Of a DNA stretch of 64,000 nucleotides, positions 7,621-58,114 are shown piece by piece (position 1 is the stretch's first letter; the number at the start of each line of letters is the position of its first letter). This stretch comes from Octopus sinensis (lineage: Eukaryota), in the NCBI RefSeq assembly GCF_006345805.1, contig NC_043005.1, forward strand, positions 14,694,001 through 14,758,000, read 5' to 3'. The notes under the pieces are model-generated. The model did no database searches. It saw nothing but the letters and a program-made list of their open reading frames with translations, and had not been told where the DNA came from. The translations under genes were made by a program, and so were the position numbers.

Positions 7621-7661
7621 TTAGAATTCATCCTGCTCCCTCTCTTTATTATTAATAACAT
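7621..7661 (-). CDS. Left gene exon 6 coding part (DVINNKEREQDEF*)
   Basis: Follows an 85-nt intron; acttttgccag| acceptor, phase 1, TAA at 7621-7623. Confidence 0.8.
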
Positions 7662-8513
7662 CTGGCAAAAGTCACACAAGCAAAATTACAGAACTATTTC
7701 ATTGTTTCTTATAAGATTGTATGAGAAATACTTTTTATCAACTTACCATTTATTGATTTACATTCATGGTAAGGAACTTGAGATAATTGATCAAGAAGAT
7801 AAATACAGGAATATATTTCAGAAGTATCCATATTCTTCACTTTGATCTAAATTAAAGTAACAAAAAGAAAAGCAACAAAATTACATCTCCAGGAATTACA
7901 TGGCTTTAGACAGGTGTCACATTTGTTCTGGACCCAGTAATTAAACAGATGGGGAACACCTCACTTATCCATCCACTCAGCAATTTTATCTCTTCTTCAA
8001 CTGAAGTGTTCTTTCAAATATTGATAACTTCATACAAGACCATCTTTACAGGGGCTCAGCTGCTCACATTCTTTACACATGATTTAGGAAACTCAAAACA
8101 ACATAAAGGAATTCTATTGGATCCACAGATGATGGCATCAGGGACAGAACCTGGTCTTGTCATCTTAATAAATTCAACTTGAAAATATTATTCCATTCTA
8201 AATCATAAATTCATGTAGAACTGAATGTTGAATCACAGTTAGTGATGGAGTCTGGTAGATATAACCTGTCTACATTTGGGTCTCTTACCTATTCTATATC
8301 CCCCATTTGTGTCTACATAAGTTGCCTAGACTGCCTCTTGGTATATCATCTCACCTTTGTATCAGTTCTCTATCACTCATCTCTCTATTATCCACCCACA
8401 CTCCACCACCAGCCTGTCTAACTAACAATAACAGTGAATCTCTCCTTTTCTCTGTACCCTGCAGTCATTGTAGGAATGTTACTGGACCTGTCTACCCTCT
8501 TGTCTCTCTCATA

Positions 8514-8555
<42 letters not shown>

Positions 8556-10640
8556 CTTACTCTCTTCCATTATGCCTCTACTATAAAGGGTGGCACTGGA
8601 ACTATCTGTACTCAATACTGCCTACAACCAGTCTTGTCCTCTCTTTCAATGCAGTCAACATCCTTTTTCTCTTTTCTTTTGCCACCCCTCAGTCCCATCT
8701 TTCTGTTTCTGCTATCATACACTTGGCCCCTTCCCCAAACACATCCTAGTTTGCTCCCACCATCACTCTACCTGCTACCCACCCTGTTTGTTGTCAAGAA
8801 TGTGACAGTCTCTCTAGTAGGGGACCATGCATGTGTGTGCCTGTGTAAATATTCACATTCTGCCCTGGGGTAAGCCAGAGACGACGATGATGACGTTTGT
8901 TGTCATTTCCCCATCAGAAAATTGTCCTGTAGCACTGCACATTCAAAGACAGGTGGAATAACATCTCCCTTCATAGAAAGCCAGGAAAGGGTTAGTGACA
9001 TAAAAAACACTGAGTTGAAAAGCATCTCCTTCATAATATGTATTCATCTAACCCATGCTAGAATAGAAAAAAGCAGTTGTAAAGCAAACAAATATATTCA
9101 TAGAATATTTGTTTATTTACAATGTTGTGTATATCAGAACTGAATTAAATCTAAATATTAAAGTATGATATTCTCTTTCATCCTTTTTTTTTTTTACTAT
9201 AATCTTGTTTCACCCAATGTGAGGTTTTAGAATATTTAAATATATAAGCAGGCATACGTACAGTAATAATCATTAATACAGTTGGTTATGTTAATAAATG
9301 TCTAAGGGGCTTATTTGGAAAAGCTGAGATTATTTATACAAATCTAAAAAACATGACAGGCAAGAAATATATTGAGGTTCAGTCAAGCAGGTATACTCAT
9401 TCTAAATGAAAAAGTAATAAAGGGTTTTACTTACATCTGTGCCCAGCTGAAATTTTCCTCTTGTCAATAACTTAATTTCTGACAGTGTATTCATTTCCGT
9501 AGGAAGGAGGAATGATTTATTTGCTGTTGTTGAATTTGGTTGAAATACTACCTTCTGTTTAACATAAGGGTCTAACCTTATATAAAACTCATATTTGCCA
9601 TATGCGTTATTACGTTGAACTTCAAAGGTCCAGTGTGTCCCTAGAAAGTAAGAGACAAAAAACGTCATCATCAGGCACAACAAAATTTCAAAATTATTAA
9701 ACATAAAATGATCATTGTCTTGTAAGGAGGTTGGATTTCAAATAAAATCATTAGAATATGATTGGAAAACATTTAGTTTTCCAATCATAGATTTATTACG
9801 TTTCTTTTCTTTTGTAATTTATTGAGATTATTTATTTCTATATCAAACAACAGAAGGAGAGGCTTTAAAAACTTTAAATAGTCACACATATGAGAAGGTA
9901 CCCAAAAGTAACTGGAAGCATTCTCTATGGGAAAAGCCCATTGTAGTCGAGGATTCTGAATTGACAAACTTTTTGATATGACTGGTGTGTCCTGGAGCTG
10001 CTGCCAACAAATTTTGAACAAGGAATTTCAAATGAAAAGAGTTGCAGCAAAATTTGTGCTTCACTTGTTCACAGAAGATCAGAAAGCAGTCTTGACTGAA
10101 TGTGTGACTCCTCTTACCCTGCCTCCCTATTCACCTGATCTTGCTCTTTGCAACTGTTTTTTTTTTTGTTCCTCTGAATAAAAAATGTCCTCAAAGGAAA
10201 ACATTTTGCAGATGTGGAAGAGAGGAAGTAAAAAACAAAACAAGCGTCAAAAGGCATCACTTTGCAAGAGTTCCAGGACTGCTTTGAACAGTGGTCTGAA
10301 TCGATGCATTGCTTCAAATGGAGAATACTTTGATGGCGATAGAAGTGTAAACATGTAAGACTAAGTGAATAAAATAATATAGCAAAATTCTGGTTTCTTT
10401 TGGGTGTTCTAGATCAGTGATTTTCAAGTCAGTTTAACTCTGAACCCTTTTCTGTCCCTAATGCTATTTTTAAATTACCCCAACCTTGTTATGATTCAAT
10501 GCATCTCTTCTTCTGATGTATATATATTAAAAATACGCAGCCATGTTCTGTGGCTAAGATGCTCAATTTGCAACCAGATCATTTAGTGTTTACTTCCAAT
10601 ATGTGGCACCTTGGAAAAGTGCCTACTACTATAAGTATAA

Positions 10641-10695
<55 letters not shown>

Positions 10696-13600
10696 CAAAT
10701 GAAAGACAGAAGATGGAATATACAAGAATTTTTTATTAGTCCCGACAATTGTTTCGGTACATCTAGCATTGATTCCTCTTGGGTGGGACACTCAACAACT
10801 GATTCTGGAGCATCTGGTGGTGCAGTTGTATCTCGTTGGGTGATGAATAAATAAAAACAACTCGTTAAAATAACTGTTCCACAACGTAACTTTCTGTTTT
10901 GTAGAGAGAAAAAAACAGCCAGACGGAGGAAAAAAATCTTCATATTTATATAGAAGATGAAAAATAAAATTGCAGAAGACAGAGAAACAAACATGTAATC
11001 CAGTGAGAGAAGTATTGAAAATAGCCATTAATAGATATGGATGTATAAACGTCCTCGGGCAAGCTGCATGGCATGAATACACAAGTGCATACAAGCATCA
11101 GCAAAAATGTGAGCATACACAAATGCTAGGTTTGGTGCAGTCCTGATCACAAAGTGAGTCAGTTATTTACTAGGTGTTTAGAAGAACGAGGAGGTTAAAA
11201 GTAAACTTAAGTCATCCATGCCTTAAAGTAAATTAAATTACATTGTGTTAACGGTTATTCAAAATTCCTTCTCACTGCATTATGCAAAAGTACATTTATA
11301 TGCATCTCAATAGTCGTTCAGAGATTCTATTAGGTATCTTCTCGTTAGTCCACAGAATATACAGGGATTCCTCGAAGCAGAGACAGCATCTCCTGGAAAT
11401 TACATCGTATGGTTTTGTATGTCTAACTATGGACCAATTAATGTTGTACTTCGTTTTACCCTCCTTCAGTCGCCATATAAAATCTGCCAAAGATGTCGAA
11501 TGTCTCTTATTGATTGATTTAAAGCTGGCAATATGGTTATGATGATGATTCTTAAATGAATCAGTGCCGTCTGCCCAATGTAATCATAGAGCCCTTCCCT
11601 TGTGTGCACGGTACATTTATATACAAGATTTGTACTCATACAGAGATTCATTAAAGGACATTTTGATTTATCTCTCCATGAGCATTTATCATATTTATTT
11701 GTATACAAGTCAGTCCCAACTCCATTTACCAGCGCTGTTATCGTGCTAGCTGTACCATGAGTATTTCTCCTACTACAAACTGGTCAAAGTTGATGACTAT
11801 CAATGTGGTTTACATCTCCTTGGTTGGTATTTAGATGCAAATGTTTGCTAGACCCAGTATGACAATATCGAACAGCTCTTCAGATGCTGTCAAACACTGC
11901 TAGGCACAATGCACTTCCAATTTTGTCTAGATTGTGTCATTCTTTTCCATCTCAACCGAAACTGTTTGACTGAATCATCTTCCCATTGTCACGGAGGCCC
12001 TCCAAATGGCCTTTTCTACACTCTGGGATATCACTTGGCAACTGCATGGTTCCACCTGTTGTCTGTGAACCTTGTGACATATCCAGCACAGTGGAACTTG
12101 TGCTTTCGATACCCTGCCATCACATTGTTCACTGAGCGCCATCCTCAAACTATTTCGAATTCTCTCAGTCATGTTCCTAGCATGGATCTTTCCATGGACC
12201 TTTGCACCATAGCCAATCAATATTTTATCTTCTTCATAGTAGCCCATGTCTCATTTGTGTGCCCTACATGGAGGGGGTGTTCTATTATTACAATTATCAC
12301 CATAACAATAATCAATGATTCATATGGAAACTTGCTTGCTCTCTCGACTGTTAGTGGCTGACATATTTTGATAGTCCGGTGACTATGATCCTTGTAAACG
12401 CCTTATAGGGGTGAGACAAGAGGCATATGCAGTGATAGTTTTTAAAATTTTCTTTATCACTCTTCTTGTGACGTAGAATGGTATTTGAAGATATTTTACC
12501 CTCCTTTAGAAAGTGGTTGAAATGTAGAATGAGGATTTTCCATAGTTCTTCACATTCACATCTTAAAAACTCTGTTGTGATGCCATTTTCCCAAGCGCTA
12601 TTTCTGTTTTCACCAGTTTGAGGGTTTTTCCAATGCCACTTATTGGAAGAGGTGGCACTTCTTCCTGCATTTGTTGCAGTGTGGAATCAAGCTTCAGCAA
12701 TGATTTAAGAACATTAGTGTAGAAGGTGTTATGTCCTCTCTCCTCCTCGGTCACCTTGAGCTCATCCTTATGCAACATACTTAATGTATGTGTGTTGTTC
12801 AACTGCCAGACCCTTTGGTTGTTCATTATAGGAAAATCCCTTCTTGATGGACGTATTGTGATGAAAACACAATATACTTCAGATCTAAGTAAAAAAAAAT
12901 CACCCCAGAATTCACTGTGAGGAAAACTAATACATATTTCCCTGATGTGGTGCATTGTCAGTGTCACATCCTCATTTCATTTCTAAAGCAAAATCAAACC
13001 GGCCAGTGTGGAACATATTGAGATAGTATATAAACTGTACACTGGTTTGCAATGGTATTGTGTAAGCTGAAAAAAAGAGAAACAAGAACACACAGCCTCT
13101 GTCTTTTCAGTCACACACAGACATTAAGTTATCTTGATAAATAGATATTGAGATATTAAATTAGAAGGACACTCAAAAGGGTAATATTTACACATTAACC
13201 TGTGCTTTAGTAAATTCTTCTAAATAGGGGAAAAAGACTTATGAATGGATTTTAATCAGTATGATTCATATAATTAAAAAAATAAAATCTCTCTCGGCTG
13301 GTTCGTCAGGCTGGAGTGGGCTATAGAAACTATGCTGATGAGGTCAAATAAACTGAAACATGACTGTAGTTATCTCATCCTTCAACATGGATCGTGTATT
13401 TCCTAATCTCATTAAATTTGGCTGATAATTTTTTTCAGTTTTGGGAAACAATCTCCCTGTTTCCTTTGAATTTTGCTTACACTGACCACAGAATTTTGCT
13501 TCCTTTCTAAAGATAAAAGACTAAATTTCAGTTGTGGCAAGAGTCACAGCACCCCCTGCAAGAATAGACTGACCAAACGTCTAAAAATAGTAGCGGTCTG

Positions 13601-16600
13601 AATGATATAGGAGAGTAGGCATTGATCGCAGGATGTCTTAGGTGTCATTTTGGCAGTTTGTTGGAATATCGTTTATTGGTTCATGGATAGTTTTTTGGAT
13701 CGTTAAGTTGTTGTTACCCTGCTTCGTTATATGCTTTATTATTACTCCACAATTATAATGTAAAAATATATCGTCATAACAATTGGCAATACAACAATTT
13801 CATTTAAGAATTTTTGCATATGGCATTCAATGTATTACCCCTAAATATATTATATTCAAATTCATGTAATTATTTCATTTGACTTATCTCTCATGAATCA
13901 CTTCTTTTTTTCATCTAATTCTATGAAATATATTGGCCAAAATTATCGGTAACTGTTTTCCTATCTGTAAAAACGTTTCTTATTTGGAATAACTTTACAG
14001 ATGTTTGTCTTTTCTTATCGCTGACAAAACAATTGTGAATTGAACCACTAAATGTAGAATAATGTGTCTTTCTTGGGGATTGAAAGGCAACAATAAGATT
14101 TGAACTCATAATATGAACCTTTCAAGTTGAATTCATTAATATTACAGTCACATGCTCCCTTGTGCATTTTGTAGGGTGTAGGGGTTGTACTAAGGAAAAC
14201 AATTCCTTGAGGAATTAAAGGAGAAGAAAAAAAACAGTAAAAGAACAAACAATAAAGAACAGTTCTGAGGCAAAATCTTACAATTTGATAATGTCATTTT
14301 GGCTCCTGGACATGGTGCTTCGCACAGAACACCATACGCTTCTTCAAGATCTTTATTTTCAATAACTATCTACAATAGAAGATCAGTGCAGGAATTTAAA
14401 ATAGTTTCATGATGATAATGATGATGGTGGTACTGATGGTGGTTGTAGTGGTGATGATGATGGTGGAGGTGATGAGGATGGTAGTGGTAGTGTTGGAAGT
14501 GGTGGTGGAGATGGTGGTAATGGTTGTGTTGGTGACGATGATGTTCATGATGAGAGTGATGATGATGATAATGATGATGGGGATGATAATGATGATGGTA
14601 ATGATGATCACGGTGACAATAAAACATTTGTAGTAAACGGCCAGTACAGACCAGTGTGGAATAGTGTCCTCACACACACACCCACACACATATTAAACCA
14701 GCTTCTTTCAGTTTCTGCCTCCGAAATCCACTCACAAAAAAATCTTGGTCAGCCAAGGGGTTTAATAGAAAATACTTGCCTAAGGTGCCACATTGAGAGA
14801 TGAATTGAAACCATATGAGCCCACTTTTTAAGCATACACCAATCCCTGTGCCTTTATACACACACACACACATACACACACCTGGCTCTCCATGCTTGTG
14901 AGATTAATGTGCAAGTGGCCGAGTATTCCACAGAATACATACTCTTAACATAGTTGTCAGGGAGATTCAGTGTGACACAGAATATGAAAAGGATGGTCCC
15001 TTTCAAACAGGCACTACTCAATTTTTGCCAACTGAGTAGACTGGAGCAATGTGAAATAAAGTGTCTTGCTCAAGGACTGAATGTGCCACCAGGAATCGAA
15101 CTCATAACCTTATGAGAGTGAGCTGAATATTCTAACCACTAGCCACCTGCCTTTACTAGACACACATACACAGGGAGAATGCAGAGCAAAATGTTATAAA
15201 CTGTTTCATGTTGAAAGACCTTTGGACAAACTTTACACCTAATTCCACAGCCATTCTCATATGCCCCTCCAGATCAAACTTTGAGAGATTAATCAATAAT
15301 AGACAGATATTTACACATGCTTAAGGAAATGATTAAATGGGATGTATAAACAAATTCTTTGGGGATCCTGAAATGGTTTAATGATATTTAGAATAAGAAA
15401 ACTACTAGATTCTTTCAAATAGATATCACTAACTACTATGCATCCATCGGCCATGTCCAATGAAATTGTAAGAAGGATTATACTGGGATGAAGCATTATT
15501 CACTATCTGTAATTGTAGCAAAAATAAAGTTGAACAGTATAAGGAAAATCTTTTGCAATTTTAAAATAGATCTGGATTTTCCATCTCTGTAGAGACAGAT
15601 CATAGTAAAGTAAAAAATTTTTTAGATATTACCCTTGACCTTATTTCTGAACTGCATCAACCATTTCACAAACCCAGTGACAACCTTAAGTACATAAGCC
15701 ACAACTCAAATCATCCAAAATGCATTATAAACTCTATAATTAAGGCAGTCTCAATTAGAATTTCTAAGCTTTTAACTAGGAAAAAATTTTTAAACAACAT
15801 GGGAGATATAACCTAACTTCAGCTGAAGTCGGTTACCAAGAAGAAATTAAATACATCCCAAATAGTAGTGATTCAGTCAAAGATAATAATGTTAACAATG
15901 GACAAATTATGATTCTGGTGACTCACAGGTGGTGTAGTTAGGACAAAGGACACAGAAACACCCTTAACCAACAGAAAGAAAGATAAGTGAACACACATAA
16001 AAGTAAGAGACAATCGAGTAACATTAATTCAAGTAAATTGACTGCTAAATCTTCACAACCTCCCAAATATGGTAGGTATAATGTTAATCACCAGCAAGAG
16101 GTGGAAGATAGGAAGCGTGGTGTGCAATAATCGCCCATATAAGATTTATTTTAATACAAGCTGACTAGCTCATGACAAAAGCATGAAGAGGAATAGTGAA
16201 GAATGTAGTAATTCTAAGAAACAGAGTGGTAGATTAAAGCAAGTAGTCTGATATAATGCACCATTGACATTGCAAATCACCACCAGTATCCTGAGACAAT
16301 TCTTCGTGGCCTTAGAAAAGCAGTTCCCACAACACAGCTTACACTGGTTATGCCTATGAAGTTCCTAAGGCAGCTGCAGGAGAAATATGTAGCCAAAGAT
16401 AAAATCTTTGTACTTGGCTTTTGTGACTTAGAGAAAGCCTTTGACAGGGTCCCCTGATCCCTCGTCAGATGGTCAATATGGAAACTAGGGATAGTTTCCA
16501 ATGAATGGCTGGTGAGAGCTGTACAAACCATGTACAGGGATGCTGTCAGTAAGGTGAGGGTTGGCAATGAGTACAGTGAAGATTTCAGGGTACAAGTAGA

Positions 16601-19600
16601 GGTTAACCAAAGATTGGTGCTCAGGCCCTCTTGTTCATCATAGTTCTCCAGGCAATAACAGAGGAAGATAGGCTGCCTCTGAGAGTTCCTCTATTCTGAT
16701 GACCTTGTTCTTATCGCTGAATCATTACCAGAACTAGAGAAGAGGTATGAAGCAAGGTCTAGAATTGAAGGGTCTTTGAGTTAACCTAGCAAAAACCAAA
16801 GCATTAGTAAGTAGGAAGGCAGACAAATTACAAATCCCTTCAGGTAGATGGACCTGCTTGATCTGTAGGAAAGAGATACGTAGAAACTCCATAATATGTT
16901 CTGAGTGTAAGTCATAGACATATAAGTGGTGCAAAAATATCAGAAGATGCATGGGAACAATAAATACAGAAAATTGACTCTATCAACTGCCAGGCGTGTA
17001 AGCTTCCATTATTTAGGTGACCAAGTTTGTAGCAGAGGTGGATGCTCCGAGAGCATAGCTGTGAGAATAAGATTAGGCAGGACAAAGTTCAGAGAGCTTC
17101 TACATCTGCTAGCAACAAAGACTTCTCTCTCAGATTGTATGATGCCTGTATGTGAATAGCCATGCTGCATGGCAGTGAAACATGGGCTGTGACAGTTGAG
17201 GACATGTGTTGGCTTGAAACAAATGAAGCCAGTATGCTTCACTGGATGTGCAACGCAAGTGTGCATGTTCAACAGAGTGTAAGCAACTTGAGGGAAATGT
17301 TGGGCATAAGAGGCACTGGATGTGGTGTGCAAGAGAGATGACTGTGATGTGATGTGTATGGATGAAGATAGCTGTGGAAAGAAGCAACAATCTCTAATTG
17401 TGGAGGGAAGCTACGGTAGAGGTGGATCCAGGAAGACATGGGATGAGGTGGTCTTCGAACTTTAGGCCTCACGGAGGCAGTGACTAGTGACAAGGACCTT
17501 TGGTGAAATGCTGTGCTTCAGAAGACCCATCAAGTCATGTGAAATTGTGATTATGGCCATTGCTGGTGTTGTGTAACTGGCACCTGTGCTGGTGACACAT
17601 AAAAATACATTTCAAGCATTGGGCCTCACCGAGGCAAGATGGCCAATGTCAGTGACACATAAAAAGCATCTTTCAAGTGTTGGGTCTCATAGAGGCAATG
17701 ATGAATGACGAAGACTCTTGACATTTTGCCAAGTGAAATCATAATTGTGTCAGATACTGGTGTCATGTGAATGACACCAGTATCTGACACAATACTGTTG
17801 ACATTAGGAAGGGCATCCAGCTATTGAAACCAAGCTAAATCAGACTGGAGTCTGGTGCAGCTTCTAGCTTGCCTGTTCTGGTCAAATCATCCAACTCATG
17901 CCACATTGGACAACGGATATTAAATGATGATGATGATATATATATGTATATGTATGGATGTATTTATGTATGTATTGATGATGATGATGATTATGGGACA
18001 GACAGAAGACAGATAGACATGGCCAGTCTATGGGGTTAGCCTGGGTTTCACATCCATAAAGCGCTTAGCTTTACAGTGTTTCTTCAGACCCTAAAATCCG
18101 TTGGCCTATGGCTTCTCTAGAAAATGGAGGAGGAAAAAGGACATCATTATTCAACAACCAGTGATTGTTGCTTTGACTGCTAATTAACTGACCATGTTGG
18201 CATGTAGATCCCAGGACACCAGCAAGAATTTCCTGAAGTGCATGCAGGGTCCAAAGACCACTATCCTAGATTTAAGGATATTCCCTATATCAAGGGAGTC
18301 CTTTTAATATTCTCATCTATTTGGCTATGCACAGTTTACAGTGCTTGGTCCCATTTATGTAATGACCTGGAGTTTCTAGGATCCTCCCTAATGTTATGTG
18401 TGGGGTCTTTCAGCCACCATGCATGACTGGCTAAGGATGAAGCATATCTCCTTTCTGGGATCCTGAAAGAGGATTTGTGGTTGGAGAAGTGCTGTTTGAA
18501 TGTGTTACTGAAACATCCGATATGTCTCCATGTTTAGGTGTTGGCAATAGTTTCTGTTGATGTTACTACCATTGTTGTTGGTATTTGTGTTGGCATCGTT
18601 GAAGCTGGTGTTGGTGTTTGTGCAGTTAATACTTGCTGCTGTTGTTATTATTATTTTTATTCCCAATCACACTTCCACCATCATCAGAAAAGAGGCTGTC
18701 TATATCAAGGCTTATATTAATTTTAGTGTTAGGGTTATAGGCAAGGCTTTGTCTATTTGGGTCAATGCTAGTACTACCACTGCTATGATTTATATTCCAT
18801 ATTAGGCAGAGATGAATGGGATAACTTTAGAGTAGATCTGCTGAAGATCAAACTATATTATGGTGATATGGAAAGTTAGAGTCTATGATGGCAAAGAAGG
18901 TTTTGGCTAAGCCCTTAAGCTTAAAGAAAAGTGGGGTGTATACCTGTTATGGAGATTATATCCCCCCACGTGATGAGTGGTATGTGGCTGTCATTATAAA
19001 TACTGTCAGTTAGTGTCAGTGTAGGAGAGAGTACAAAGTAGACAGTCATAGATAGTCGTGGCCTTTTCTAACTAACTATGCTGCTTTAATGCTCTGGACA
19101 TTACAACAGTCTGACAAAGGATTACAATAGTGGCGATGAGGAATTAACAAGCTCACAAAAGTATTTTGTGCAAATTTTATGGTATACAAAATCGTAAAAT
19201 CATGGTAAAGTTGTTGGCCAGTTTGCTTGAATTGCTAAAAGAGCAACAACAACTGAAAGAACAATAACAGCAGCAGCTACAACTGCAAGAGCAACAGCAA
19301 CAAATGCTGCAATTAATGAAGTTGTCTAAAAATGTTGAGAAGATGTTCCCGCTAGATTATGTTGCAAATTGAACAACGAAGTTTAAGAATGAACCAGACA
19401 AAGGAGTTACCTTCAAAGCATACTACAGAAGATACAAACAAATCTTCAATAAAGAGTGCAAAGTTTGGGACGACGATATGAAAATGCATCTTATCTTAAG
19501 AAAACTGGCAGCAGCAGTGCATTATAGTAATTATATACTCCCGAGAAACCCTTCTGGATACAAAAGACATACTGTGTAAAATTTCTAGTGAGAAAAGCTC

Positions 19601-20713
19601 ATTCTTCACTACATGCTGGAAATGTTTGAACCTAGAAAAGAATGAAGAGGACTACATCACATAGAATAACAGAGAATGTGAAAAGTTTAAACTGGACAAA
19701 TTAACGCCAGATATATTCAAGTGCCTGATATTTATTCAGGGACTAACTGCAGAGAAAGACACAGAAGTTACAACAAGAATTGTCACTAGGTTGGAACAAA
19801 ACCAAGCTGTAACCTTACAACAAGTGTCAGAAGAGTGTGAAAGAATAGTAAAAGAGAGCAAATTGAACATAAAGATTGCTCCCAAGTGAAACAAGTGCAA
19901 AATAGCCAGAATAGAAATCAAGTGTGTATTAAAGTACAGTTCAAACAGGACAAAAATCAAGGAACAAAGCCATGTTTGCATGTGACAGTCTACACTTGAG
20001 AAAAAACTGCCCATTTAAAAAGGTGAATGTTTCTGTTGAGGAAAAATTGGACACATACACTGTAAAACCAAGATGACAAAACATTGGAACAAAGCGAAAA
20101 GAATATGTCATCAAAGAAAAAAATAATGTAACAAAGAGGAAATATGTAAATGTGAAAATTGAAAATCTAAGAGTAAAAATGCAGTTAGACACTGAAAGAA
20201 GAATGAATGAAGAAACTTGGAAGTATATCAGTAAACTGAAATTAAGTAAATCTACAAAAGTAGCACATGGTGTTATGGGTAAAAGATTGTATTTTGTAAA
20301 TGAATTTGTGTGATGTGACATTTTGTGACCAAATGAAAATAGCAAAAATATATATGTTAAAAATTTCAGTTAATCTATTTGGCACAGAGTGGATGGAAGT
20401 ATTCAAATTGTGGAATGCACCTAAAAGTGTTTTGGGTGGAAATATTGTTGGTTCTGTCAAAAGTTCAAATGCAGCTGAGAGGTTGAAATGGAAAATAAAA
20501 GTTATTTCCAGAAGTTTTCTCAGTTAGAGTAAATAAAATTTATTTAAGCCATTCACTGTTCACCATTACACCAAATTCTTCTTGGAACCCCCCCCCCCAC
20601 AAATTATTGTGAAATTTAATGGGAACATACTGCATATAAAACATTAATTACCTGTTTCAGCTTATTTCTTTTAAAATACCATAATTCTTGATGAAACAGG
20701 TGTAATAAAATCT

Positions 20714-20745
<32 letters not shown>

Positions 20746-21971
20746 TTATTCTAATTTACCTGGAACTCCGTAGATGGACGAATGTCAATAGAATGTGGTC
20801 TTGTGTCGTTGACCAAGTCAATTTCAGTTGTGAAGCAGTTGTCCTCGTTTGGACATGTTATGTTTGTATATGTATCCCCGTTCAAAATAAGGTGAACTGA
20901 AGACTTATGTGCCTCAGTGTAACAAATTTCCACATTCCATTTTCTGGCCTGGGTATCTGACAAATAATTTGAAAAAATGAAAAATGTTTATCAATTATTT
21001 TCAAAACATCTTTAAAATATTTATACTGTGAATAGTTATTCTATTCTTCTCCTCTCTAGTAATTTATTACCAATTTCAGCCAGACTGTGGCCATGCTGGG
21101 GCACCACCCTAGTTATGCCAAAAAAACTAGTGTATAATATTGGAATTTTTTTTGAAAAAAACACCAAAATCTGAATAATTATTGTCAGTTGGAACTCTTC
21201 AAACATTTACTTTCAAGAAACTATGTTTTTTTTCTTTATATATGTTTTGTTCATGAATAAATCTGTTTGCCTTATTTTTAAAATCATTTTTCTCTACAAC
21301 AACCACTCTAGTTTCATGACAGAATGCCTGATGCTAATGCAGTGGAAAGAATTACTTTATCATTATGGCCAGTATTTCTCTGCTTTTCTCTTTTACATTT
21401 CAATATCCATTCCATCAATGCTAACATGAAAGAAGGAAAAACAGAGTAGAAGCCAGGAAGCTCACAACAAAACCATAAGCAATTTCTGAAATGGAACATC
21501 ATTATCATCATTTCAATATCTACCTTTCCCATGCTTGCATGGGTCAGGTGGAATTTTTTGAGGCAGATTTTCTACAACTGGATGCTATTCCTGTCACCAA
21601 CTCTCACCTTTTTCCATAAAACTGGTAACAAGGGACACTGCCTTTATGATGGTGATGCTTGTTACAGTCATCACGAGAGGTCACAACAAAGGCAGCAAAC
21701 ACACATGCACATAGCTTTTATGTTTTACTTGTTTCAGTCACTAGACTGTGGCCATGCTGGGGCACCACCTTGAAGAATTTCTAATCGAACGAATTAACCC
21801 AAATACTTTTATTTTCCTTTAAGCCTGCTACTTATTCTATTGATCTCTTTGCCAAACTGCTAAGTTATGGGGACACAAACACAGCAACACTGGTTGCCAA
21901 GCTTGTGGGGTGGGGGGAGACAAACAGACAAAAAGACACACACACACAGATACATACATATGTGTTTGTCA

Positions 21972-22017
<46 letters not shown>

Positions 22018-22226
22018 TCTCTTTACTCTTTTACTTGTTTCAGTCATTTGACTGCGGCCATGCTGGAGCACCGCCTTTAGTCGAGCAAATCGACCCTGGG
22101 ACTTATTCTTTGTAAGCCCAGTACTTATTCTATCGGTCTCTTTTGCCGAACCGCTAAGTGATGGGGACATAAACACACCAGCATCTGTTGTCAAACAATG
22201 CTAGGGGCACAAACACAGACACACAA

Positions 22227-22259
<33 letters not shown>

Positions 22260-24451
22260 CGACAGGCTTCTTTCAGTTTCCGTCTACCAAATCCACTCAC
22301 AAGGCGTTTGTCGGCCCGGGGCTATAGCAGAAGACACTTGCCCAAGATGCCAGGCAGTGGGACTGAACCCGGAACCATGTGGTTGGTTAGCAAGCTACTT
22401 ACCACACAGCCACTCCTGTGCCTATATATATATACTAGCAGAATTGCCCGGCGTTGCTCAGGGCTGAATTGCTTGAAAGTACTGTTAATGATTGCACTGA
22501 ATTATGATGATTATTCAGGCAAATATTGATATAAGCTTACGGTGGGAGATAAGGACTTAACGATCAAACGTGTGCCATTGCATTGTTTTGGGGGAACCAA
22601 ATTTCTGATGAGCATTATAGGGGCACCAACTTTAAATTTGAGAAAGTGTGGTGGTAGTCCGGGGTGCTCAAAGGAATTGAGTACCTCTATTGGATAGTTG
22701 ATGACGTCCTCTGGGTCAGGAGTTGTATCGATAGACTGATATACATAGACTTCCCCAGGAATGAGTTTTAGCATTTTATCATTAATATGGTGAACAGTTT
22801 TATTCCTCGGGGCCAGTATAGCCTTTTTGCCAATCCAATCCATATTCTGATAATTAGCTTGTAGATCTGGGAACACTGCATCTCTGAGATCAGAAGGCGT
22901 CTTAGCAATGGTACAAATGGAATCGATGGCAATATTACCATTTTCATCCCCTGGTATTTTGCCTTCGCCAAGTGCAAGGAGGGTGTGAGGAAATGCTGCT
23001 GATGTGATATTACGTCGCATATGAGCACACATATTGGTGTGAAGTTTGAGAGTTACTTCCATTTATTAAAAAAAATATGCATTAAAATGGAAAAAAATGA
23101 TGGTAAATTATTTGTAAAATCATAGACTCATCGTAGACGCGCGCTAATACCCAGGAGGACTCGATAGGAATCACGACTATAAGATACCCGGTTTTGGTTA
23201 AACTGCATCGCAAAATGTGGGAGTAGTTAGGAATCTAAATCGGAGTAGACAGACACACAACCTTTCTTTTATATATAAATATTTTCGTCCTAAAAAACTT
23301 TGTATGGATTGAATGGTTACCTCTATGGAAATATATACACGCACATTATACATACATGTGTGTATAGATGAATATATAAATACATTTAAATATCTATATA
23401 CTGTTTTGGGCGATCTTTCTGTTTCTTAGAGATAACTTTAGATCTTATTTTCGTCCTAAAAAACTTTGTATGGAGTGAATGGTTACCTCTATTGAAATAT
23501 ATACACACACGTTATACATACATGTGTGCATAGATGAATATATAAATATATTTATATATCTATATACACTTTTGGGCGATCTTTGTGCTACTTAGAGATA
23601 ACTTTAGATCTTATTTTCGTCCTAAATAACTTTGTATGGAGTGAATGGTTACGTCTATGGAAATATATACACACACATTATACATACATCTGTGTATAGA
23701 TGAATATATAAATACATTTAAATATCTATATACACTTTTGGGCGATATTTCTGCTACTTGGATATACTTTAGATCTTATATTCGTCCTAAAAAACTTTCC
23801 AGTCACACACTCACGCACACGCACACACACACACATGCACCCTCATACACACACACGCGCACACACACACACTCACACACACGCACGTTAGCTTACAATT
23901 TTATTTATATATTTGCGTGTCTATGTGTGTAAAGAGGAAGTGGGAGGCAGAGTGAAAGAGTCACTCACTTCAGAAAGTGAATTACTTTCATTTTATTCGT
24001 TGCACACTGTGTGTGTGCGTTTGCGTGTGCTGTATCCCACACTAAGAGAAGCATTTGACTCATACACCACAATGTGAGTTTTCTCTAAATTTTGCTTAAT
24101 TGGGGTTGAAATTTTAAAAAGTGGACCTGGCACGACCCGATGCATTCTACTCTTAAAAATGCTAGGTAAATTGTAATTGAAGAAATCCTATATTGTAGAT
24201 TTCTATAAGATACAAAGGGAGGCAGATAAAATCTGCCTTTTATAATAAGAGATATCTCTTATTATAAAAGGCAGATTTTATCTGCCTCCCTTTGTCTCTT
24301 ATAGAAATCTACAATATAGGATTTCTTCAATTACAATTTACCTAGCGGGTCGTGCCAGGTCAAGTTTTTCAAATTTCACCCCCAATTAAGCAAAATTTCG
24401 AGAAAACCCACATTGTGGTGTGTAAGTGAAGTGCTTTTCTTAGTGTGGGCT

Positions 24452-24516
<65 letters not shown>

Positions 24517-24942
24517 AGCGAAATGCTTCACTCATGCTATCACCCTAATTTCTCCTCCTTTCTCTTTGCAAGTGTGCAACGATTAAAGTGAAAGTATTTA
24601 TATAAAACGAGAGAAGTGTACATTAAACCACTACTCAAAAAAAAAAAACACAGCAAACAGAAACAAATAAATACATAACGATTTACTCCTCACACAATTT
24701 CTTCAATTAGAGTTTACCTATGATTTTTCAAAGTACTTCCATTCGGTCATGGCATACAAAATTTCTTTCAATTTCACCCCCATTTCAGAAAAAATTCAAG
24801 AAAACTAAATATTTTACCATTTCACTCACTTCAAAGCCTTTACTCTGCATATTACTCCCACTTCCTATTTACACACATAGACACGCAAATATATAAATAA
24901 AATTGTAAGCTAACGTGTGTGTGTGTGTGTGTGTGTGAGTGT

Positions 24943-25003
<61 letters not shown>

Positions 25004-28000
25004 TGTGTGACAGGGATGAGCCAGTCAGACTGGTCATCCTTTTTGCTAGAAGATCACCTATGGTCTTTATGCTACACCACTGGTTTTCAGTTCATATTAA
25101 TCAAATTCATATTCACAACAAGAAGGACTATTCATTATAATACATCAGTTCCACACATTTACCCTGGTTCCATTTCGGACAACTGCACAAACATTTGCCA
25201 TTTCACACATGTATGTAAACAAATTCCTTTCTTAAAAATTTCAATTCATTTTCTTTTTCAGTTCATACAAAGTTTTTCAGGACGAATATAAGATCTAAAG
25301 TATATCCAAGTAGCAGAAATATCGCCCAAAAGTGTATATAGATATTTAAATGTATTTATATATTCATCTATACACACATGTATGTATAATGTGTGTGTAT
25401 ATATTTCCATAGAGGTAACCATTCACTCCATACAAAGTTATTTAGGACGAATATAAGATCTAAAGTATATCCAAGTAGCAGAAATATCGCCCAAAAGTGT
25501 ATATAGATATTTAAATGTATTTATATATTCATCTATACACAGATGTATGTATAATGTGTGTGTATATATTTCCATAGACGTAACCATTCACTCCGCACAA
25601 AGTTTTTTAGGACGAAAATAAGATCTAAAGTTATCTCTAAGAAACAGAAAGATCGCCCAAAAGTGTATATAGATATTTAAATGTATTTATATATTCATCT
25701 ATGCACACATGTATGTATAACGTGTGTGTATATATTTCCATAGAGGTAACCATTCACTCCATACAAAGTTTTTAGGACGAAAATAAGATCTAAAGTTATC
25801 TCTAAGAAACAGAAAGATCGCCCAAAACAGTATATAGATATTTAAATGTATTTATATATTCATCTATACACACATGTATGTATAATGTGCGTGTATATAT
25901 TTCCATAGAGGTAACCATTCAATCCATACAAAGTTTTTTAGAACGAAAATCTTTATATATAAAAGAAAGGTTGTGTGTCTGTCTACTCCGATTTAGATTC
26001 CTAACTACTCCCACATTTTGCGATGCAGTTTAACCAAAACCGGGTATCTTATAGTCGTGATTCATATCGAGCCCTCCTGGGTATTAGCGCGCGTCTACGA
26101 TGAGTCTACGATTTTACAAATAATTTACCATCATTTTTTTCCATTTTAATGCATTTTTTTAAAATAAAGGGTAGTAACTCTCAAACTTCACACCAATATG
26201 CGTGCTCATATGCGACGTAATATCACATCAGCAGCATTTCCTCACACCCTCCTTGCACTTGGCGAAGGCAAAATACCAGGGGATGAAAATGGTAATATTG
26301 CCATCGATTCCATTTGTACCATTGTTAAGACGCCTTCTGATCTCAGAGATGCAGTGTTCCCAGATCTACAAGCTAATTATCAGAATATGGATTGGATTGG
26401 CAAAAAGGCTATACTGGCCCCGAGGAATAAAACTGTTCACCATATTAATGATAAAATGCTAAAACTCATTCCTGGGGAAGTCTATGTATATCAGTCTATC
26501 GATACAACTCCTGACCCAGAGGACGTCATCAACTATCCAATAGAGGTACTCAATTCCTTTGAGCACCCCGGACTACCACCACACTTTCTCAAACTTAAAG
26601 TTGGTGCCCCTATAATGCTCATCAGAAATTTGGTTCCCCCAAAACAATGCAATGGCACACGTTTGATCGTTAAGTCCTTATCTCCCACCGTACACTTATA
26701 TCAATATTTGCCTGAATAATCATCATAATTCAGTGCAATCATTAACAGTACTTTCAAACAATTCAGCCCCGAGCAACGCCGGGCAATTCTGCTAGTATAT
26801 AATAAAAATTTGTATGTTTATCAAGATTCCTAATGCGAAATCGTGTTGAAACAGATATTATTCTATTTCGAGACTATATATTTTCTCTTCATTTGTTTAT
26901 TATCGTTCTTATTTCAACAGACATGAGTTGAAATACAAATAGTAATAAATGAGTGAAAAACAAATATTTAGTATGTTTATTTGGGAATTTTTAAAAAATG
27001 ACCATCCTGAAATCTTTATATATAAAAGTAAGGTTGTGTGTCTGTCTCCTACGATTTAGATTCCTAACTACTCCCACATTTTGCGGTGCAGTTTAACCAA
27101 AACCGGGTATCTTATAGTCGTGATTCATATCGAGCCCTTCTGGGTATTAGCGCACGTCTACCATGAGTCTACGATTTAAAAAAAAAATTTACCATCAATT
27201 TTCCCCCATTTTTAATGCATTTTTTTTCTATTATATAAGGGAAGTAACTCTCTAAAAATGTATTATTAAATCTCAGAACATAAAAGCTACAGTAACACCC
27301 CCCTTTGTGGTTAGCCATATTGAGATGGCTATTATACTTTACATCTCTAAAAATGCTTATATAGTTATTTCCCTTACAAACCCGAGCAACGCCGGGCGAT
27401 ACTGCTAGTACAATATAAATATATTCAGATATATATATACTCACAAGGCACTGGTCAGCCTGAAGCTATAGGTGCCACATAGTGAGACTGAACCTGGAAC
27501 CATATGGTTGGGAAGCAAGCTTCTTACTACACAGACACACCTGTGCATATAAATATGTGTGTGTAGAAATTTATAATAAATTATTAATTATAATTGAGGG
27601 TACACAAAGTACCAGTGTTACTAGAAATAAGAGTTGAAAAATACTAAATCTCTGAGAGAGATTCATGTAGTAGCAGCATGATAAAATGATAGTATGTTGT
27701 CAACTTAATGTGACAGTCCCATGAAAGGGAAGAATGCTACTGTTGTGTAGCCCTAGGAAATACTGTTTCCTGTTGGGCTTGACACATTTCCTGTTCTGTC
27801 ATCATAGAACCTCATAAAGAATGGTGCAAACAAGCTCCCTTTAAATGGGAAAACCAAGTTCAAATGACTGCAGTACGGGAATTCTGCAATAGCATTAACC
27901 CTTTAGTGTTTAAACCAGCCAAATCCGGCCCAATATATTCTACATGTTTTATATTCAAACTGGCGATATCTAGCCTCTCACTCCTAACCTACAATGTCAT

Positions 28001-28637
28001 TCTGAAAATAAACAATCACATCATTGAAACCTCAAAGCTATAAGATAATGCATGATTAATTCAAAACAATTTGAGTGAAAAAGTATTACATTTAACAGAG
28101 TATTCTGAACACTAAAGGGTTAAACTTTGAGCTACCATATTTCTGTTGAAATGCACTGCCATTGTCTATTAATTTTGGAAGTTGTGAAGAATTCATTTAA
28201 ATAACTTTGTCATTATGAAGCAAATGTTTGGAACATGACATGAGATTTTGATGGCAGGTTTTACTTCAGATGAATTTAAAACAGAGAATGTCTATGATTC
28301 AACCAGGAGTGACGTTACTATGTGGTTTGGGATCAAAAAGATTAAACCAAGTGATAGATAAGGTCAACCACCCAAGAACAGGAACAGAAATGAACTCTAC
28401 AACAGGCTACCACAGAATCCCCAACTATCCAGTTCCACACTTTAGATTTTAGCTGACCTGAGACTGTTGTACAAGACCCTAATCCAGGGTACCATACAGT
28501 AGAAACTGACCTGAAAACAAACCTCTTCATTATACACAGCCATACATAATGATTGCAGAAATAAATAAATAAGAGAACTTACAAAAGAAATGAGGTAAAA
28601 CAAAGAATAAAATACTGCAATAGGAAAGAACCAGCAT
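7621..28637 (-). CDS. Six-exon gene, left paralog; 228-aa predicted secretory/ER-luminal protein with two beta-rich repeats and C-terminal QDEF
   Basis: Exons of 55+197+88+206+100+41 = 687 nt. All introns are GT-AG with phases 1,0,1,0,1. Translation: MLVLSYCSILFFVLPHFFYTQARKWNVEICYTEAHKSSVHLILNGDTYTNITCPNEDNCFTTEIDLVNDTRPHSIDIRPSTEFQIVIENKDLEEAYGVLCEAPCPGAKMTLSNWTHWTFEVQRNNAYGKYEFYIRLDPYVKQKVVFQPNSTTANKSFLLPTEMNTLSEIKLLTRGKFQLGTDIKVKNMDTSEIYSCIYLLDQLSQVPYHECKSINDVINNKEREQDEF*. No transcript evidence is available to me. Confidence 0.85.
7747..7846 (-). CDS. Left gene exon 5 (IKVKNMDTSEIYSCIYLLDQLSQVPYHECKSIN)
   Basis: tttaatttag| acceptor, g|gtaagt donor, 100 nt, phase 0 to 1. Confidence 0.88.
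9435..9640 (-). CDS. Left gene exon 4 (first part of repeat domain 2)
   Basis: ttactttctag| acceptor, gat|gtaagt donor, 206 nt, phase 1 to 0. Confidence 0.9.
9889..10413 (+). mobile_element. Internally deleted mariner/Tc1 relic (mirror 58342-58867 -)
   Basis: PPYSPDLA motif, RVAAKFV, C-terminal CIASNGEYFDG, degenerate TIRs (cccaaaagtaactggaa / ttctggtttcttttggg). Confidence 0.85.
11290..11730 (-). mobile_element. Penelope-like GIY-YIG endonuclease relic (mirror ~57050-57490 +)
   Basis: KCPL..LVYKCTV..YIGQT; FIWRLKE..YNINWSIV..RRCCLCFEES. Confidence 0.8.
11960..12230 (-). mobile_element. Old RTE-like LINE 3' relic (mirror ~56520-56830 +)
   Basis: Degenerate CAGYVTRFTDNRW..YPR..KRPFGGP. Confidence 0.6.
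14282..14369 (-). CDS. Left gene exon 3 (IVIENKDLEEAYGVLCEAPCPGAKMTLSN)
   Basis: cttctattgtag| acceptor, t|gtaaga donor. Phase 0 to 1 exactly bridges exons 2 and 4, and the N-terminal part resembles exon 5. Confidence 0.8.
14409..14630. repeat. Degenerate trinucleotide (GAT/GGT) tract (mirror ~54165-54360)
   Basis: Low-complexity tract, ~40 nt upstream of the exon 3 acceptor. Confidence 0.9.
15150..16150 (+). mobile_element. Penelope-like RT relic (mirror ~52400-53560 -, which retains an extra ~245 bp)
   Basis: FLDITLDL..LHQPFHKPSDNLKYISHNSNHPKCII; degenerate LYWDEA (YRDDG-type) motif. Confidence 0.7.
16270..17935 (+). mobile_element. RTE LINE RT and 3' end, degenerate; only the 5' part is mirrored at ~51690-52270 (-)
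   Basis: FCDLEKAFDRVP, LVRAVQTMYRDAVSKVRVG, FLYSDDLVLIAES, RIRLGRTKFRELL; (ATG)n tail. Confidence 0.88.
18190..18640 (-). mobile_element. Penelope-like GIY-YIG relic (left arm only)
   Basis: NTFKQHFSNHKSSFR..SHAWWLKD..NGTKHCKLC. Confidence 0.65.
18937..20521 (+). mobile_element. 3'-truncated Ty3/gypsy LTR retrotransposon (5' LTR ~18937-19126, PBS 19131-19141, degenerate gag and protease)
   Basis: TGTA...TACA LTR ends, TGGCGATGAGG PBS, Q-rich gag start, degenerate CCHC knuckle, MQLDT protease-like motif, multiple stops. Confidence 0.8.
20760..20956 (-). CDS. Left gene exon 2 (first part of repeat domain 1)
   Basis: ttatttgtcag| acceptor, cag|gtaaat donor, 197 nt open, phase 1 to 0. Confidence 0.88.
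22022..22420 (-). mobile_element. tRNA-derived SINE (family also at ~29020-29418 and ~35110-35510)
   Basis: Head caggagtggctgtgtggtaag...ggttcagtcccact, internal CA/TA microsatellite. I recognise it as an abundant Octopus-type SINE. Confidence 0.85.
22435..23281 (-). mobile_element. Non-autonomous Helitron (~847 bp) carrying a PIF1-type helicase fragment
   Basis: 3' hairpin plus CTAG before T. ORF has LAPRN, INDKML, SID, YPIEVLNS, GLPPH, KVGAPIMLIRNL, CNGTRL. The 5' TC is mutated. Confidence 0.92.
23281..23800. repeat. ~166-bp satellite, 3 units plus partial
   Basis: Unit starts at 23281, 23447, 23613 and 23778. Confidence 0.92.
24161..24346. repeat. Zero-spacer palindrome, 93-bp arms, 1 mismatch, centre 24253/24254
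   Basis: Arms compared base by base; imperfect symmetry continues outward to ~24010 and ~24470. Confidence 0.95.
25270..25949. repeat. ~166-bp satellite, 4 units, inverted relative to 23281-23800
   Basis: Repeating aaagttttttaggacgaaaataagatctaaag... Confidence 0.92.
25950..26795 (+). mobile_element. Non-autonomous Helitron (846 bp) carrying a PIF1-type helicase fragment
   Basis: a|TC at 25950, cccgagcaacgccggg hairpin, CTAG|t at 26792-26795. Near-identical to the copy at 22435-23281. Confidence 0.93.
27013..27408 (+). mobile_element. Short non-autonomous Helitron (396 bp)
   Basis: a|TCTTTATATATAAAAG ... hairpin ... CTAG|t. Confidence 0.9.
28583..28637 (-). CDS. Left gene exon 1 (signal peptide)
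   Basis: gccATG context, MLVLSYCSILFFVLPHFF+T, donor T|gtaagt (phase 1). Confidence 0.8.
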
Positions 28638-29516
28638 GGCAGTAGATGGAACGAATTGGATATTCTTGACAAATGGTAACTTTCCTTATATTCTTGAAAT
28701 CTTTTGTAAACAGTGTTGATTAGAATTTCTAAATGTTTGTAGACAGGAGTATTATTAATTTCTTTATTTTCTTCTGTTTAACTGTATTTACAAACTGTAA
28801 AGAAAAAGGATAAAATTCTTGGGACTTCAAATTCTTAGGTTTTTTGGATTTTCTTTTTTAATAAATCAACAAAACTGAAAGTCTGACAGAGATCTGGGGA
28901 TATATTTTTTAATGTTTGGACAATATTATTGCATCTTAGCTTTTATAATACATCGTCTGGCAGTTATGACAAAGATTTTTTATAAATGGACAATAGATAG
29001 AAACATACATATACATATACTCTCTCTTTTACTCTTTTACTAGTTTCAGTCATTTGACTGTGGCCATGCTGGAGCACCGCCTTTAGTCGAGCAAATCAAC
29101 CCCGGGACTTATTCTTTGTAAGCCTAGTACTTATTATATCGGTCTCTTTTGCCGAACCGCTAAGTGACGGGGACGTAAACACACCAGCATCGGTTGTCAA
29201 GCAATGCTAGGGGGACAAACACACACACACACACATACATATATATACATGTATACGACAGGCTTCTTTCAGTTTCCGTCTACCAAATCCACTCACTAGG
29301 CATTGGTCTGCCCGGGGCTATAGCAGAAGACACTTGCCCAAGATGCTACGCAGTGGGACTGAACCCGGAACCATGTGGCTGGTTAGCAAGCTACTTACCA
29401 CACAGCCACTCCTGCACCTATATATAGAATATCAAGAAAGTCAGGAGATATGAGATGGAGATATTTATGTCACCAGTTGATATCCATAGGATGGCAATCA
29501 TTTCACAAACAAGCAT

Positions 29517-34741: not shown

Positions 34742-35585
34742 TTACACTGTCGAAGGTGCAATGTCTTACATACACACATGCAAATATAAACCTACCTATA
34801 CACATGTACAAGCACACGCAATCATATAAACGCGTATACACACGCATATAGGTATAATCTTATATACATACGTCTTTTTTCACATACAACGTTTAAACAC
34901 ATATACACACATACATACGTACGTACATGCGTATGTGCATGCATATATATCATGAATTAACTGTTACTTTCTCAGTTGCGGCTTCAAGTTCAATCAGTGA
35001 ACAGGTCGCAGTTTCAAAGCGAAGAAAATATGTTGACACCAATTCAATTTAAATGTTGAAGTGAAACTAACGGGGTTTTTTTGTGTTCTTAAATGGCTTA
35101 CAAACATATACTCTTTTACTCTTTTACTTGTTTCAGTCCTTTGACTGCGGCCATGCTGGAGCACCGCCTTTAATCGAGCAACTCAACCCCGGGACTTATT
35201 CTTTTGTAAGCCCAGTACTTATTCTATCGGTCTCTTTTGCCGAACCACTAAGTAACGGGGACGTAAACACACCAGCATCGGTTGTCAAGCAATGCTAGGG
35301 GGACAAACACAGACACACAAACATACACGCACACACATATATATATATACATATATACGACAGGCTTCTTTCAGTTTCCGTCTACCAAATCCACTCACAA
35401 GGCATTGGTCGGCCCGGGGCAATAGCAGAAGACACTTGCCCAAGGTGCCACGCAGTGGGACTGAACCCGGAACCATGTGGTTGGTTAGCAAGCTACTTAC
35501 CACACATCCACATATATATATATTGGTAAAACGGTAAGATAACAAAAGAAAGAAAGAGACCTCAATATTATGTAATGTAACATAT

Positions 35586-35729
<144 letters not shown>

Positions 35730-35734
35730 ATGTG

Positions 35735-36740: not shown

Positions 36741-36749
36741 ATTATATCT

Positions 36750-58075: not shown

Positions 58076-58114
<39 letters not shown>

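Follow-up and report, generated by a model that had tools for sequence, protein, structure and literature searches.

How can two genes that lie in opposite arms of a single palindrome have nearly identical introns and yet have coding exons that, in sharply bounded patches, are about ten times as divergent? This question is raised by a stretch of 64,000 nucleotides (nt) of the Octopus sinensis genome (hereafter the window; its sequence is identical to chromosome CM016867.1), the whole of which proves to be one large inverted duplication with two head-to-head paralogues, LOC118764737 (copy A, on the minus strand) and LOC118764774 (copy B, on the plus strand). Within it, the span 7621-28637 had been picked out in an initial annotation, made from the sequence alone, as encoding a protein with a signal peptide, two beta-rich repeats and a C-terminal QDEF that might hold it in the endoplasmic reticulum (ER), so that a second question, of what kind of protein is made, is bound up with the first. 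The most notable property of the locus is that its exon patches exceed its introns roughly ten-fold in divergence, within a palindrome that is conserved in a sister species. We consider it likely that the gene encodes an octopus-only, uncharacterised, receptor-like type I membrane protein, and that the two receptor genes are an older pair than their introns suggest, shaped by gene conversion together with selection.

As delimited by self-BLAST, the left arm of the palindrome (423-34948) carries copy A and the right arm (39655-64000) carries copy B, the two being separated by a spacer of about 4.7 kb (34949-39654); the homology between the arms runs on past the window, over the whole of the gene. 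An origin as a fold-back artefact of assembly was considered and rejected, because in an independent assembly, that of Octopus vulgaris, the pair is again head to head, its members having the A-type and the B-type exons respectively. The palindrome has long inverted arms of high identity that are conserved in a related species.

The contrast between coding and non-coding sequence is most easily seen in the introns around exons 3-6, where copies A and B differ by 1.37% over 7,529 aligned sites, a value close to the 1.06% that separates the same introns of copy B in O. sinensis from those of copy B in O. vulgaris. Exon 1 differs by 1.8%, but the corresponding figures are 16.8% for exon 2, 5.7% for exon 3, 13.1% for exon 4 (concentrated in its first two thirds), 19% for exon 5 (in two patches), 17% for exon 7, 22% for exon 8 and 11% for exon 9, and these differences form sharp patches, with the adjoining introns 98-100% identical. 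The rates of non-synonymous (dN) and synonymous (dS) substitution are both far above the intron rate, being respectively 0.16 and 0.14 in exons 2-5, 0.23 and 0.09 in exon 7, and 0.13 and 0.07 in exon 9, and dN/dS ranges overall from 1.2 to 2.5. Even third positions that are silent in otherwise unchanged codons have 4-5 times the divergence of the introns (P = 0.003-0.03). The earlier suspicion that divergence between the copies is unusual is borne out, with most exons at 11-22% against about 1.4% in the introns. Relaxed constraint was rejected as its cause: it cannot explain a pattern in which exons are far more diverged than introns.

As to when these differences arose, 31 of 196 sites in exon 2 are diagnostic of the A or the B type in O. 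sinensis and O. vulgaris alike, and nearly all of the exon differences likewise predate the split of these two species, being common to both within a type. Exon change after the split amounts to about 0.5%, much the same as in the introns, and no more than one site is consistent with concerted evolution during that time. The arms form a mosaic in their non-coding sequence, with divergence lowest in the 3' part (1.3-1.5%), intermediate near exon 1 and in some stretches of intron 2 (2.3-2.9%), and highest in the introns on either side of exon 2 (5.5-8.7%). In a protein tree A and B are sisters (189 of 200 bootstraps), and both carry derived residues relative to their Octopus bimaculoides relatives. 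The alternative relationship, in which A and B would each have an O. bimaculoides orthologue of its own (P0027 and P0026), was rejected, as the tree does not support it, although a few patches do match that pattern.

Turning to the gene itself, the span 7621-28637 is the 5' half of O. sinensis LOC118764737, and takes in the exon for the signal peptide together with two of the four two-exon modules, the first and the second. On the minus strand, exon 1 (28637-28583) begins with the ATG at 28637, encodes the signal peptide (MLVLSYCSILFFVLPHFF + 1 nt) with its 18 hydrophobic codons, and ends in phase 1; exon 2 (20956-20760, phase 1-0) encodes the first part of unit 1 (YTQA/RKWNVEIC...TEFQ, where here and below a slash within a sequence marks an exon border or a cleavage site) and exon 3 (14369-14282, phase 0-1) its second part (IVIENKDLEEAYGVLCEAPC...); and exon 4 (9640-9435, phase 1-0; WTHWTFEV...GKFQLGTD) and exon 5 (7846-7747, phase 0-1; IKVKNMDTSEIYSCIY...YHECKSIN) do the same for unit 2. 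Every border of these five exons is a canonical AG/GT, and both the minus-strand layout and the phases originally proposed could be rebuilt at their coordinates; the motifs WNVEI, WTFEV, FQ/IVIENKDLEEAY and ..TD/IKVKNMDTSEIY are all present in copy A, and the Tyr codon of YTQA is split by the junction of exons 1 and 2. Residues 1-217 of the resulting model are 100% identical to the NCBI product of LOC118764737 (P0001, 385 residues, “uncharacterized protein”, Octopus sinensis), with exon 1 also a 100% match. Of a gene with at least 12 exons the span contains just the first 5, the remainder extending beyond the left edge of the window; in the NCBI model the donor of exon 5 joins exon 7 (DSMWRVELTS...FDIFQ), about 200 nt past window position 1. 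In the O. vulgaris orthologue (P0004, 98% identical) the protein goes on through the remainder of unit 3 and then unit 4 to a stalk, a transmembrane helix and a tail of 86 residues.

Copy B, which is NCBI LOC118764774, spans 44873-61116 on the plus strand. Its exon 1 (44873-44927) encodes a signal peptide beginning MLVLTYCS..., exons 3 (54397-54484) and 4 (59116-59321) mirror those of copy A, and exon 5 (60891-60990) contains the Met at which isoform X2 of the NCBI model (P0007) starts; this isoform reads ...ECLLVN/ASVWRVELTS, that is, from exon 5 straight into unit 3. In exon 2 (48108-48303) one nucleotide is missing from an A-run (AGAAAATGG becoming AGAAATGG), such that the frame of the exon is kept only if the acceptor AG at 48114-48115 is used and the exon starts at 48116; in the O. 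vulgaris B copy exon 2 is in frame. This is one of three single-base insertions or deletions (indels) by which the O. sinensis assembly differs from O. vulgaris, located at window positions 48108-48125 (copy B exon 2) and, outside the window, at L001 ~47128-47132 (a 1-nt insertion in copy A exon 8) and L001 ~50475-50485 (a 1-nt deletion in copy A exon 10 that creates an in-frame TAA). Two of them fall in A-runs and one is an additional T; they may be long-read assembly errors or they may be genuine lesions.

There are four exon-paired units in total, not the two first described, exons 2+3 and 4+5 lying in the window and exons 7+8 and 9+10 outside it; the pairing of exons and the beta-rich character of the units both stand. 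Each unit, of about 95-108 residues, joins a longer phase 1-0 exon (65-78 codons) to a shorter phase 0-1 exon (29-33 codons), and the latter always opens with I-x-[V/I/L/M]-x-[N/T] and has an aromatic residue some 10 positions later. That the units resemble one another, as had also been proposed, holds for their phase pattern and their 7-8 predicted strands, while at the level of sequence the similarity between them is marginal (pairwise z-scores of 1.6-2.9); the best profile-profile result was for unit 1 against unit 2 (P = 0.015, over 74-85 co-linear columns), followed by unit 2 against unit 3 (P = 0.05), with the remaining pairs of units not significant in such comparisons. The case for repetition therefore rests mainly on gene structure and predicted strands. 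The structural model was obtained with AlphaFold using a 19-sequence alignment of the family (a 3-sequence run gave a predicted local distance difference test score, pLDDT, of 30 and was unusable); it has a pLDDT of 72, rising to 80-94 across most of units 1 and 2, and a predicted template modelling score of 0.67, and it shows one helix, at residues 2-22, corresponding to the signal peptide, and otherwise only beta strands. This helix, together with the conservation across the family of a hydrophobic core followed by ..QA/[TR]xW, agrees with the hydrophobic N-terminus and plausible cleavage after YTQA that had been noted at the outset. Five N-x-S/T sequons lie within residues 23-215.

The description of the architecture as unrecognised has also held up. 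Neither of the two window proteins has a Pfam match at an expectation value (E) <= 10; among 17 family members searched at E <= 1 there was nothing in the ectodomain, the weak matches being confined to the transmembrane segment; and the family profile gave 0 matches at E <= 10 against the sequences in the PDB. A Foldseek search of the PDB, for which the whole four-domain model was used rather than single units, gave no match at E <= 1e-3. The best value was 2.4e-3, with a probability of at most 0.44 and weak template modelling (TM) scores of at most 0.17, and the best matches were tandem immunoglobulin (Ig)-like receptors (PirB/LILRB3 and KIRs; 6grq, 7k80, 9f2d) and a designed Ig dimer; also among the matches, at low TM-scores, were pilins and further proteins with several sandwiches. 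The modules have features expected of the Ig superfamily, with 7-8 strands in about 100 residues and four modules bounded by phase-1 introns, and an Ig-like sandwich would fit the phase 1-1 modules and the motif ...D-x-S-E-I-Y-S-C...; this is best regarded as a lead from modelling rather than as demonstrated membership. The Pfam Ig models (ig, I-set, V-set, C2-set, Ig_2/3) had no match in the 17 members at E <= 1, a placement of Cys residues like that of Ig strands B and F is found in unit 1 only, and in units 2 and 3 a Cys pair is modelled in the last two strands. A likeness to PLAT/LH2 domains, suggested initially from the spacing of the strands, found no support in these searches. Such domains are also all-beta sandwiches of about 100 residues with up to eight strands, but the octopod units have no match to PF01477, and among the top 50 Foldseek matches to the four-domain model there was no PLAT/LH2 structure.

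An exhaustive HMMER search of 1.84 billion representative sequences at E <= 1e-3 found 24, of which one was an unrelated metagenome protein and many of the rest align along the whole query, giving a family of about 23 members at 50% identity. Wherever a member has a named source, this is O. sinensis, O. vulgaris, O. bimaculoides or Argonauta hians, and each such entry is labelled “uncharacterized”; a literature search on six LOC identifiers from the family found no paper. Most full-length members extend to a membrane-spanning helix and a tail with tyrosine. In 13 members, including P0004, there is a strongly hydrophobic 19-mer (mean Kyte-Doolittle value 2.8-3.9), with R/K residues next and then a tail that contains Tyr and may reach about 200 residues, and in the present locus the transmembrane exon lies downstream of the window, at L001 52718-52762, where it is preceded by the 1-nt deletion in O. 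sinensis exon 10. With an N-terminal 18-residue hydrophobic core followed by YTQA/R, and with a transmembrane helix and tail in P0004 and 12 others, these have the layout of type I single-pass proteins. The architecture of the family runs from a signal peptide through four beta-sandwich modules in tandem and a short stalk to a single transmembrane helix, after which comes a cytoplasmic tail of 40-200 residues. Six tails contain a motif resembling [D/E]-I-Y-x-N-[L/M/T], and four have Y-E-[D/E]-[L/F] or Y-L-E-I near the C-terminus. Such a protein would be an N-glycosylated cell-surface receptor of type I, its ectodomain might bind a ligand that varies, whether non-self, conspecific or environmental, and the tail could signal by way of phosphotyrosine; recognition and signalling are functions that we infer only from the architecture, the restriction to one lineage, the number of copies and the pattern of divergence.

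Some further details of the family may be recorded here. The YxN-type motif [D/E]-I-Y-x-N-[L/M/T] recurs in the tails, those of P0011, P0014, P0015, P0020, P0027, P0032 and P0033 being listed, and several also have Y-E-[D/E]-L near the C-terminus; the tail of the Argonauta member P0015 contains several copies of a repeat (S)DIEQLYxxPI. In O. bimaculoides, the locus of P0002 (L003) has introns of about 0.5-1.1 kb, as against about 1.6-7.6 kb in the O. sinensis genes, the extra length being mostly repeats.

How, then, might the exons have come to differ so much more than the introns? It may be supposed that the duplicates A and B are older than most of their introns suggest, that gene conversion from arm to arm went on homogenising most non-coding DNA up to a time not long before O. 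sinensis and O. vulgaris separated, and that selection for different ectodomain surfaces would have preserved, and added to, the patches of difference in the coding exons. Conversion homogenising the introns while selection held the exons apart is probably what took place, and the mosaic of non-coding divergence, from 1.3% to 8.7%, suggests that there was conversion before the split. There are several considerations that tell against this account and the receptor interpretation that goes with it. Beyond the single possible site mentioned above, no sites of concerted evolution after the split were found, and gene conversion is not proven; the excess at silent sites could be explained by clustered multi-nucleotide mutation; and the orthologue's tail ends in ...TTEIYY and has only a membrane-proximal YQML, without the distal Tyr motifs of the family. 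The receptor function, the ligand, the tissue and the signalling are all inferred, the assignment of the fold is a weak one that comes from modelling and from the Foldseek values given above, and the predicted junction of exon 5 with exon 7 has as its basis the gene models of four species together with conservation across paralogues. Finally, should the three 1-nt indels prove genuine, the proteins of O. sinensis would be cut short or dead.

This last point leads to a first alternative, that one or both of the O. sinensis copies are decaying pseudogenes, or encode truncated secreted forms, and that the exons diverged under relaxed constraint. The indels would be in keeping with this, particularly that in exon 10 with its in-frame TAA, as would a dN/dS close to 1 in exons 2-5 and the fact that the NCBI model of copy B begins only at exon 5. 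However, neutral decay should have left the exons at about 1.4%, like the introns, rather than at the 11-22% seen; the differences are mostly older than the split, and both types are maintained in O. vulgaris with open frames; exon 7 has accumulated 41 substitutions in 78 codons without a stop codon; and indels of this kind (two in A-runs, one an extra T) are the typical error pattern of long-read assembly. We regard decay as an improbable explanation. It is also conceivable that the duplication is truly as young as the introns imply (about 1.4%), these never having been homogenised, and that the exons then underwent a short burst of change through positive selection, through clustered mutation focused on exons, or through short conversion tracts from other paralogues. 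The very sharp borders of the divergent patches, with the introns beside exons 4 and 5 being 98-100% identical, would be readily understood in this way, as would the sister relationship of A and B in the tree and the clustering of silent changes beside replacement changes, and there is a precedent in the ‘accelerated evolution’ of venom genes, documented as a ratio of non-synonymous to synonymous rates (KA/KS) > 1 (PMC6062510; its refs 20, 22, 23). Set against this, silent sites too are 4-5 times more diverged than introns, and the combination of 5.5-8.7% divergence in the introns flanking exon 2 with mosaic arms is what partial conversion would predict. Moreover, since exons have changed no faster than introns (about 0.5%) after the split, such a burst must have begun and ended within a narrow interval. 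A young duplication of this sort is a possibility to be taken seriously, if a doubtful one.

A different kind of alternative concerns the product rather than its history, and holds that the gene makes, as its main product or as a minor isoform using an alternative terminal exon, a soluble two-repeat protein whose C-terminal QDEF causes the KDEL receptor to return it to the ER. The open reading frame (ORF) in question lies at 7661-7621 on the minus strand in copy A, where the AG at 7663-7662 is followed in frame by (D)VINNKEREQDEF and a TAA stop, and at 61076-61116 on the plus strand in copy B, where it reads (G)VLDNKEREQDEF and stop; that both copies contain an in-frame ...EQDEF followed by a stop (...EREQDEF in copy B) was correctly observed in the initial annotation. 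It begins 85 nt inside intron 5, at the first acceptor-like AG of that intron to have a good pyrimidine tract (0.70), and it is unbroken in copies A and B and in the O. vulgaris B copy; furthermore, its 3 A-B differences in 41 nt, which exceed the intron average, are all non-synonymous, and all fall in its first five codons. Nor is the resemblance to a retrieval signal absurd, because xDEF endings can act on the KDEL receptor, KDEF and HDEF both being retained by it, although more weakly than xDEL (PMC7617889). Nevertheless, this activity is reported for KDEF and HDEF, and the final F of QDEF departs from the pattern [KRHQSA]-[DENQ]-E-L. The intactness of the ORF is uninformative, because the intron on both sides of it is about 99% identical in A and B, and any AG in intron 5 would yield a short ORF. 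A poly(A) signal is absent for 320 nt downstream in copy A, where the first AATAAA is met at 321 nt, and no AATAAA occurs within 1.2 kb of the ORF in copy B.

Further evidence comes from the relatives. None of the annotated O. sinensis or O. vulgaris models uses the QDEF ORF as its end, no member of the family alignment ends in QDEF or stops after unit 2, and all members that cover the junction read YHEC.L.N/[DA]S.W[KR][IV]ELTS, directly into unit 3. In the O. bimaculoides locus L003, which is a different paralogue, a search showed nothing that aligns with exon 5, the QDEF ORF or exon 7. A soluble lumenal protein would also be at odds with the transmembrane helix and tail of P0004 and 12 other members. 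Judged from the sequences, the QDEF terminus appears to be an intronic coincidence; the ORF lies within an intron and is not the end of the conserved protein, and ER residence is therefore unsupported. We consider the soluble QDEF-terminated form very unlikely. Its likeness to signals of the KDEL/HDEL type, such as the HDEF of calumenin, lies in the final Q-D-E-F of an intronic ORF, and differs from them in that the tetrapeptide is not the C-terminus of a conserved protein and that the octopod family is membrane-anchored. The case illustrates how a short in-frame ORF just within an intron may mimic a meaningful C-terminal signal.

Returning to the reading of A and B as an old receptor pair, it is helpful to compare them with better-known systems. 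Large palindromes with gene conversion between their arms occur on the human Y and X chromosomes, and the octopus palindrome is like these in that its inverted arms, 34 kb or more in length, flank a spacer of some 4.7 kb, its non-coding identity is mostly 97-99%, and it is conserved in a sister species. In classical palindromes, however, the genes in the arms are nearly identical, whereas here the coding patches are the most divergent parts and no conversion after the split was detected. A related concept is that of ‘islands of divergence’ under selection, in the models of Innan and of Teshima. Among venom genes, such as those for crotaline phospholipase A2 and Conus toxins, exons reportedly diverge much faster than non-coding parts (Nakashima, 1993 and 1995, which are refs 22 and 23 of PMC6062510), and the resemblance extends to a dN/dS of 1 or more and to recent tandem or inverted duplicates; the octopus genes are unlike them in that the product is a receptor-like membrane protein and not a secreted toxin, that the divergence is patchy within exons, and that the genes lie in a palindrome, making gene conversion an alternative explanation. 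The vertebrate paired receptors LILR/PirB and KIR, which gave the best, though weak, Foldseek matches to the octopod model, are also type I proteins with tandem beta-sandwich domains of about 100 residues and phase 1-1 borders, and form lineage-restricted, multi-copy, clustered and fast-evolving families with tyrosine motifs in their tails; unlike them, the octopod members lack any Ig Pfam match (n=17) and have tail motifs that are not canonical immunoreceptor tyrosine-based inhibitory or activation motifs (ITIM/ITAM), and homology is not demonstrated.

Cephalopods are not known to have antibody-type adaptive immunity, and few variable receptor families are described in them other than protocadherins, G-protein-coupled receptors and chemotactile receptors. 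Against this background a family that is without recognised domains, is confined to octopods and has exons about ten times as divergent as introns is a concrete candidate for a lineage-specific recognition system, and the conserved palindrome allows a test of gene conversion working in opposition to diversifying selection. It is tempting to go further and to place the A/B pair in an undescribed, Octopoda-specific family of diversified recognition receptors, an invertebrate counterpart of KIR/LILR, in which conversion would erase neutral differences while selection would keep the ligand-binding patches; we put this forward only tentatively, and think it rather unlikely as it stands. Were it true, the coding patches would be the sole ‘old’ sequence in otherwise young arms, the family would be a candidate system for non-self or chemotactile recognition in cephalopods, and the locus would provide an unusually clean natural case of selection against gene conversion at a scale below that of the exon.

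Some minor features of the window remain to be described. Its base composition (34-45% GC) and its abundant microsatellites and transposon fragments are of eukaryotic character. The first exon of the O. vulgaris model P0003 (MSFDVSQYVIPDLLEELCKQ...) maps to the spacer, at 35910-36056 on the plus strand, with partial inverted copies of the same sequence at 36112-36189 and 36388-36438, and this model looks like a chimera of a spacer ORF with copy B exons. Intron 1 of copy A contains a nested inverted repeat (22425-23798 and 25434-26804, 97.9% identical), each arm of which has an ORF fragment of a Pif1 helicase (2B domain), with tandem repeats of about 165 bp between the arms (23280-23798 and 25257-25950); this is probably the remnant of a Helitron. 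In the inner part of the left arm, an ORF of 251 residues at 29450-30205 on the plus strand contains a reverse-transcriptase domain (RVT_1, E = 6e-16) and is a retroelement fragment. Lastly, an imperfect CAC/CAT microsatellite at 14370-14630, just upstream of exon 3, is mirrored near 54150-54400 and gives rise to long His/Tyr-rich pseudo-ORFs on one strand; between copies A and B it differs by 15 nt in length and by several substitutions.

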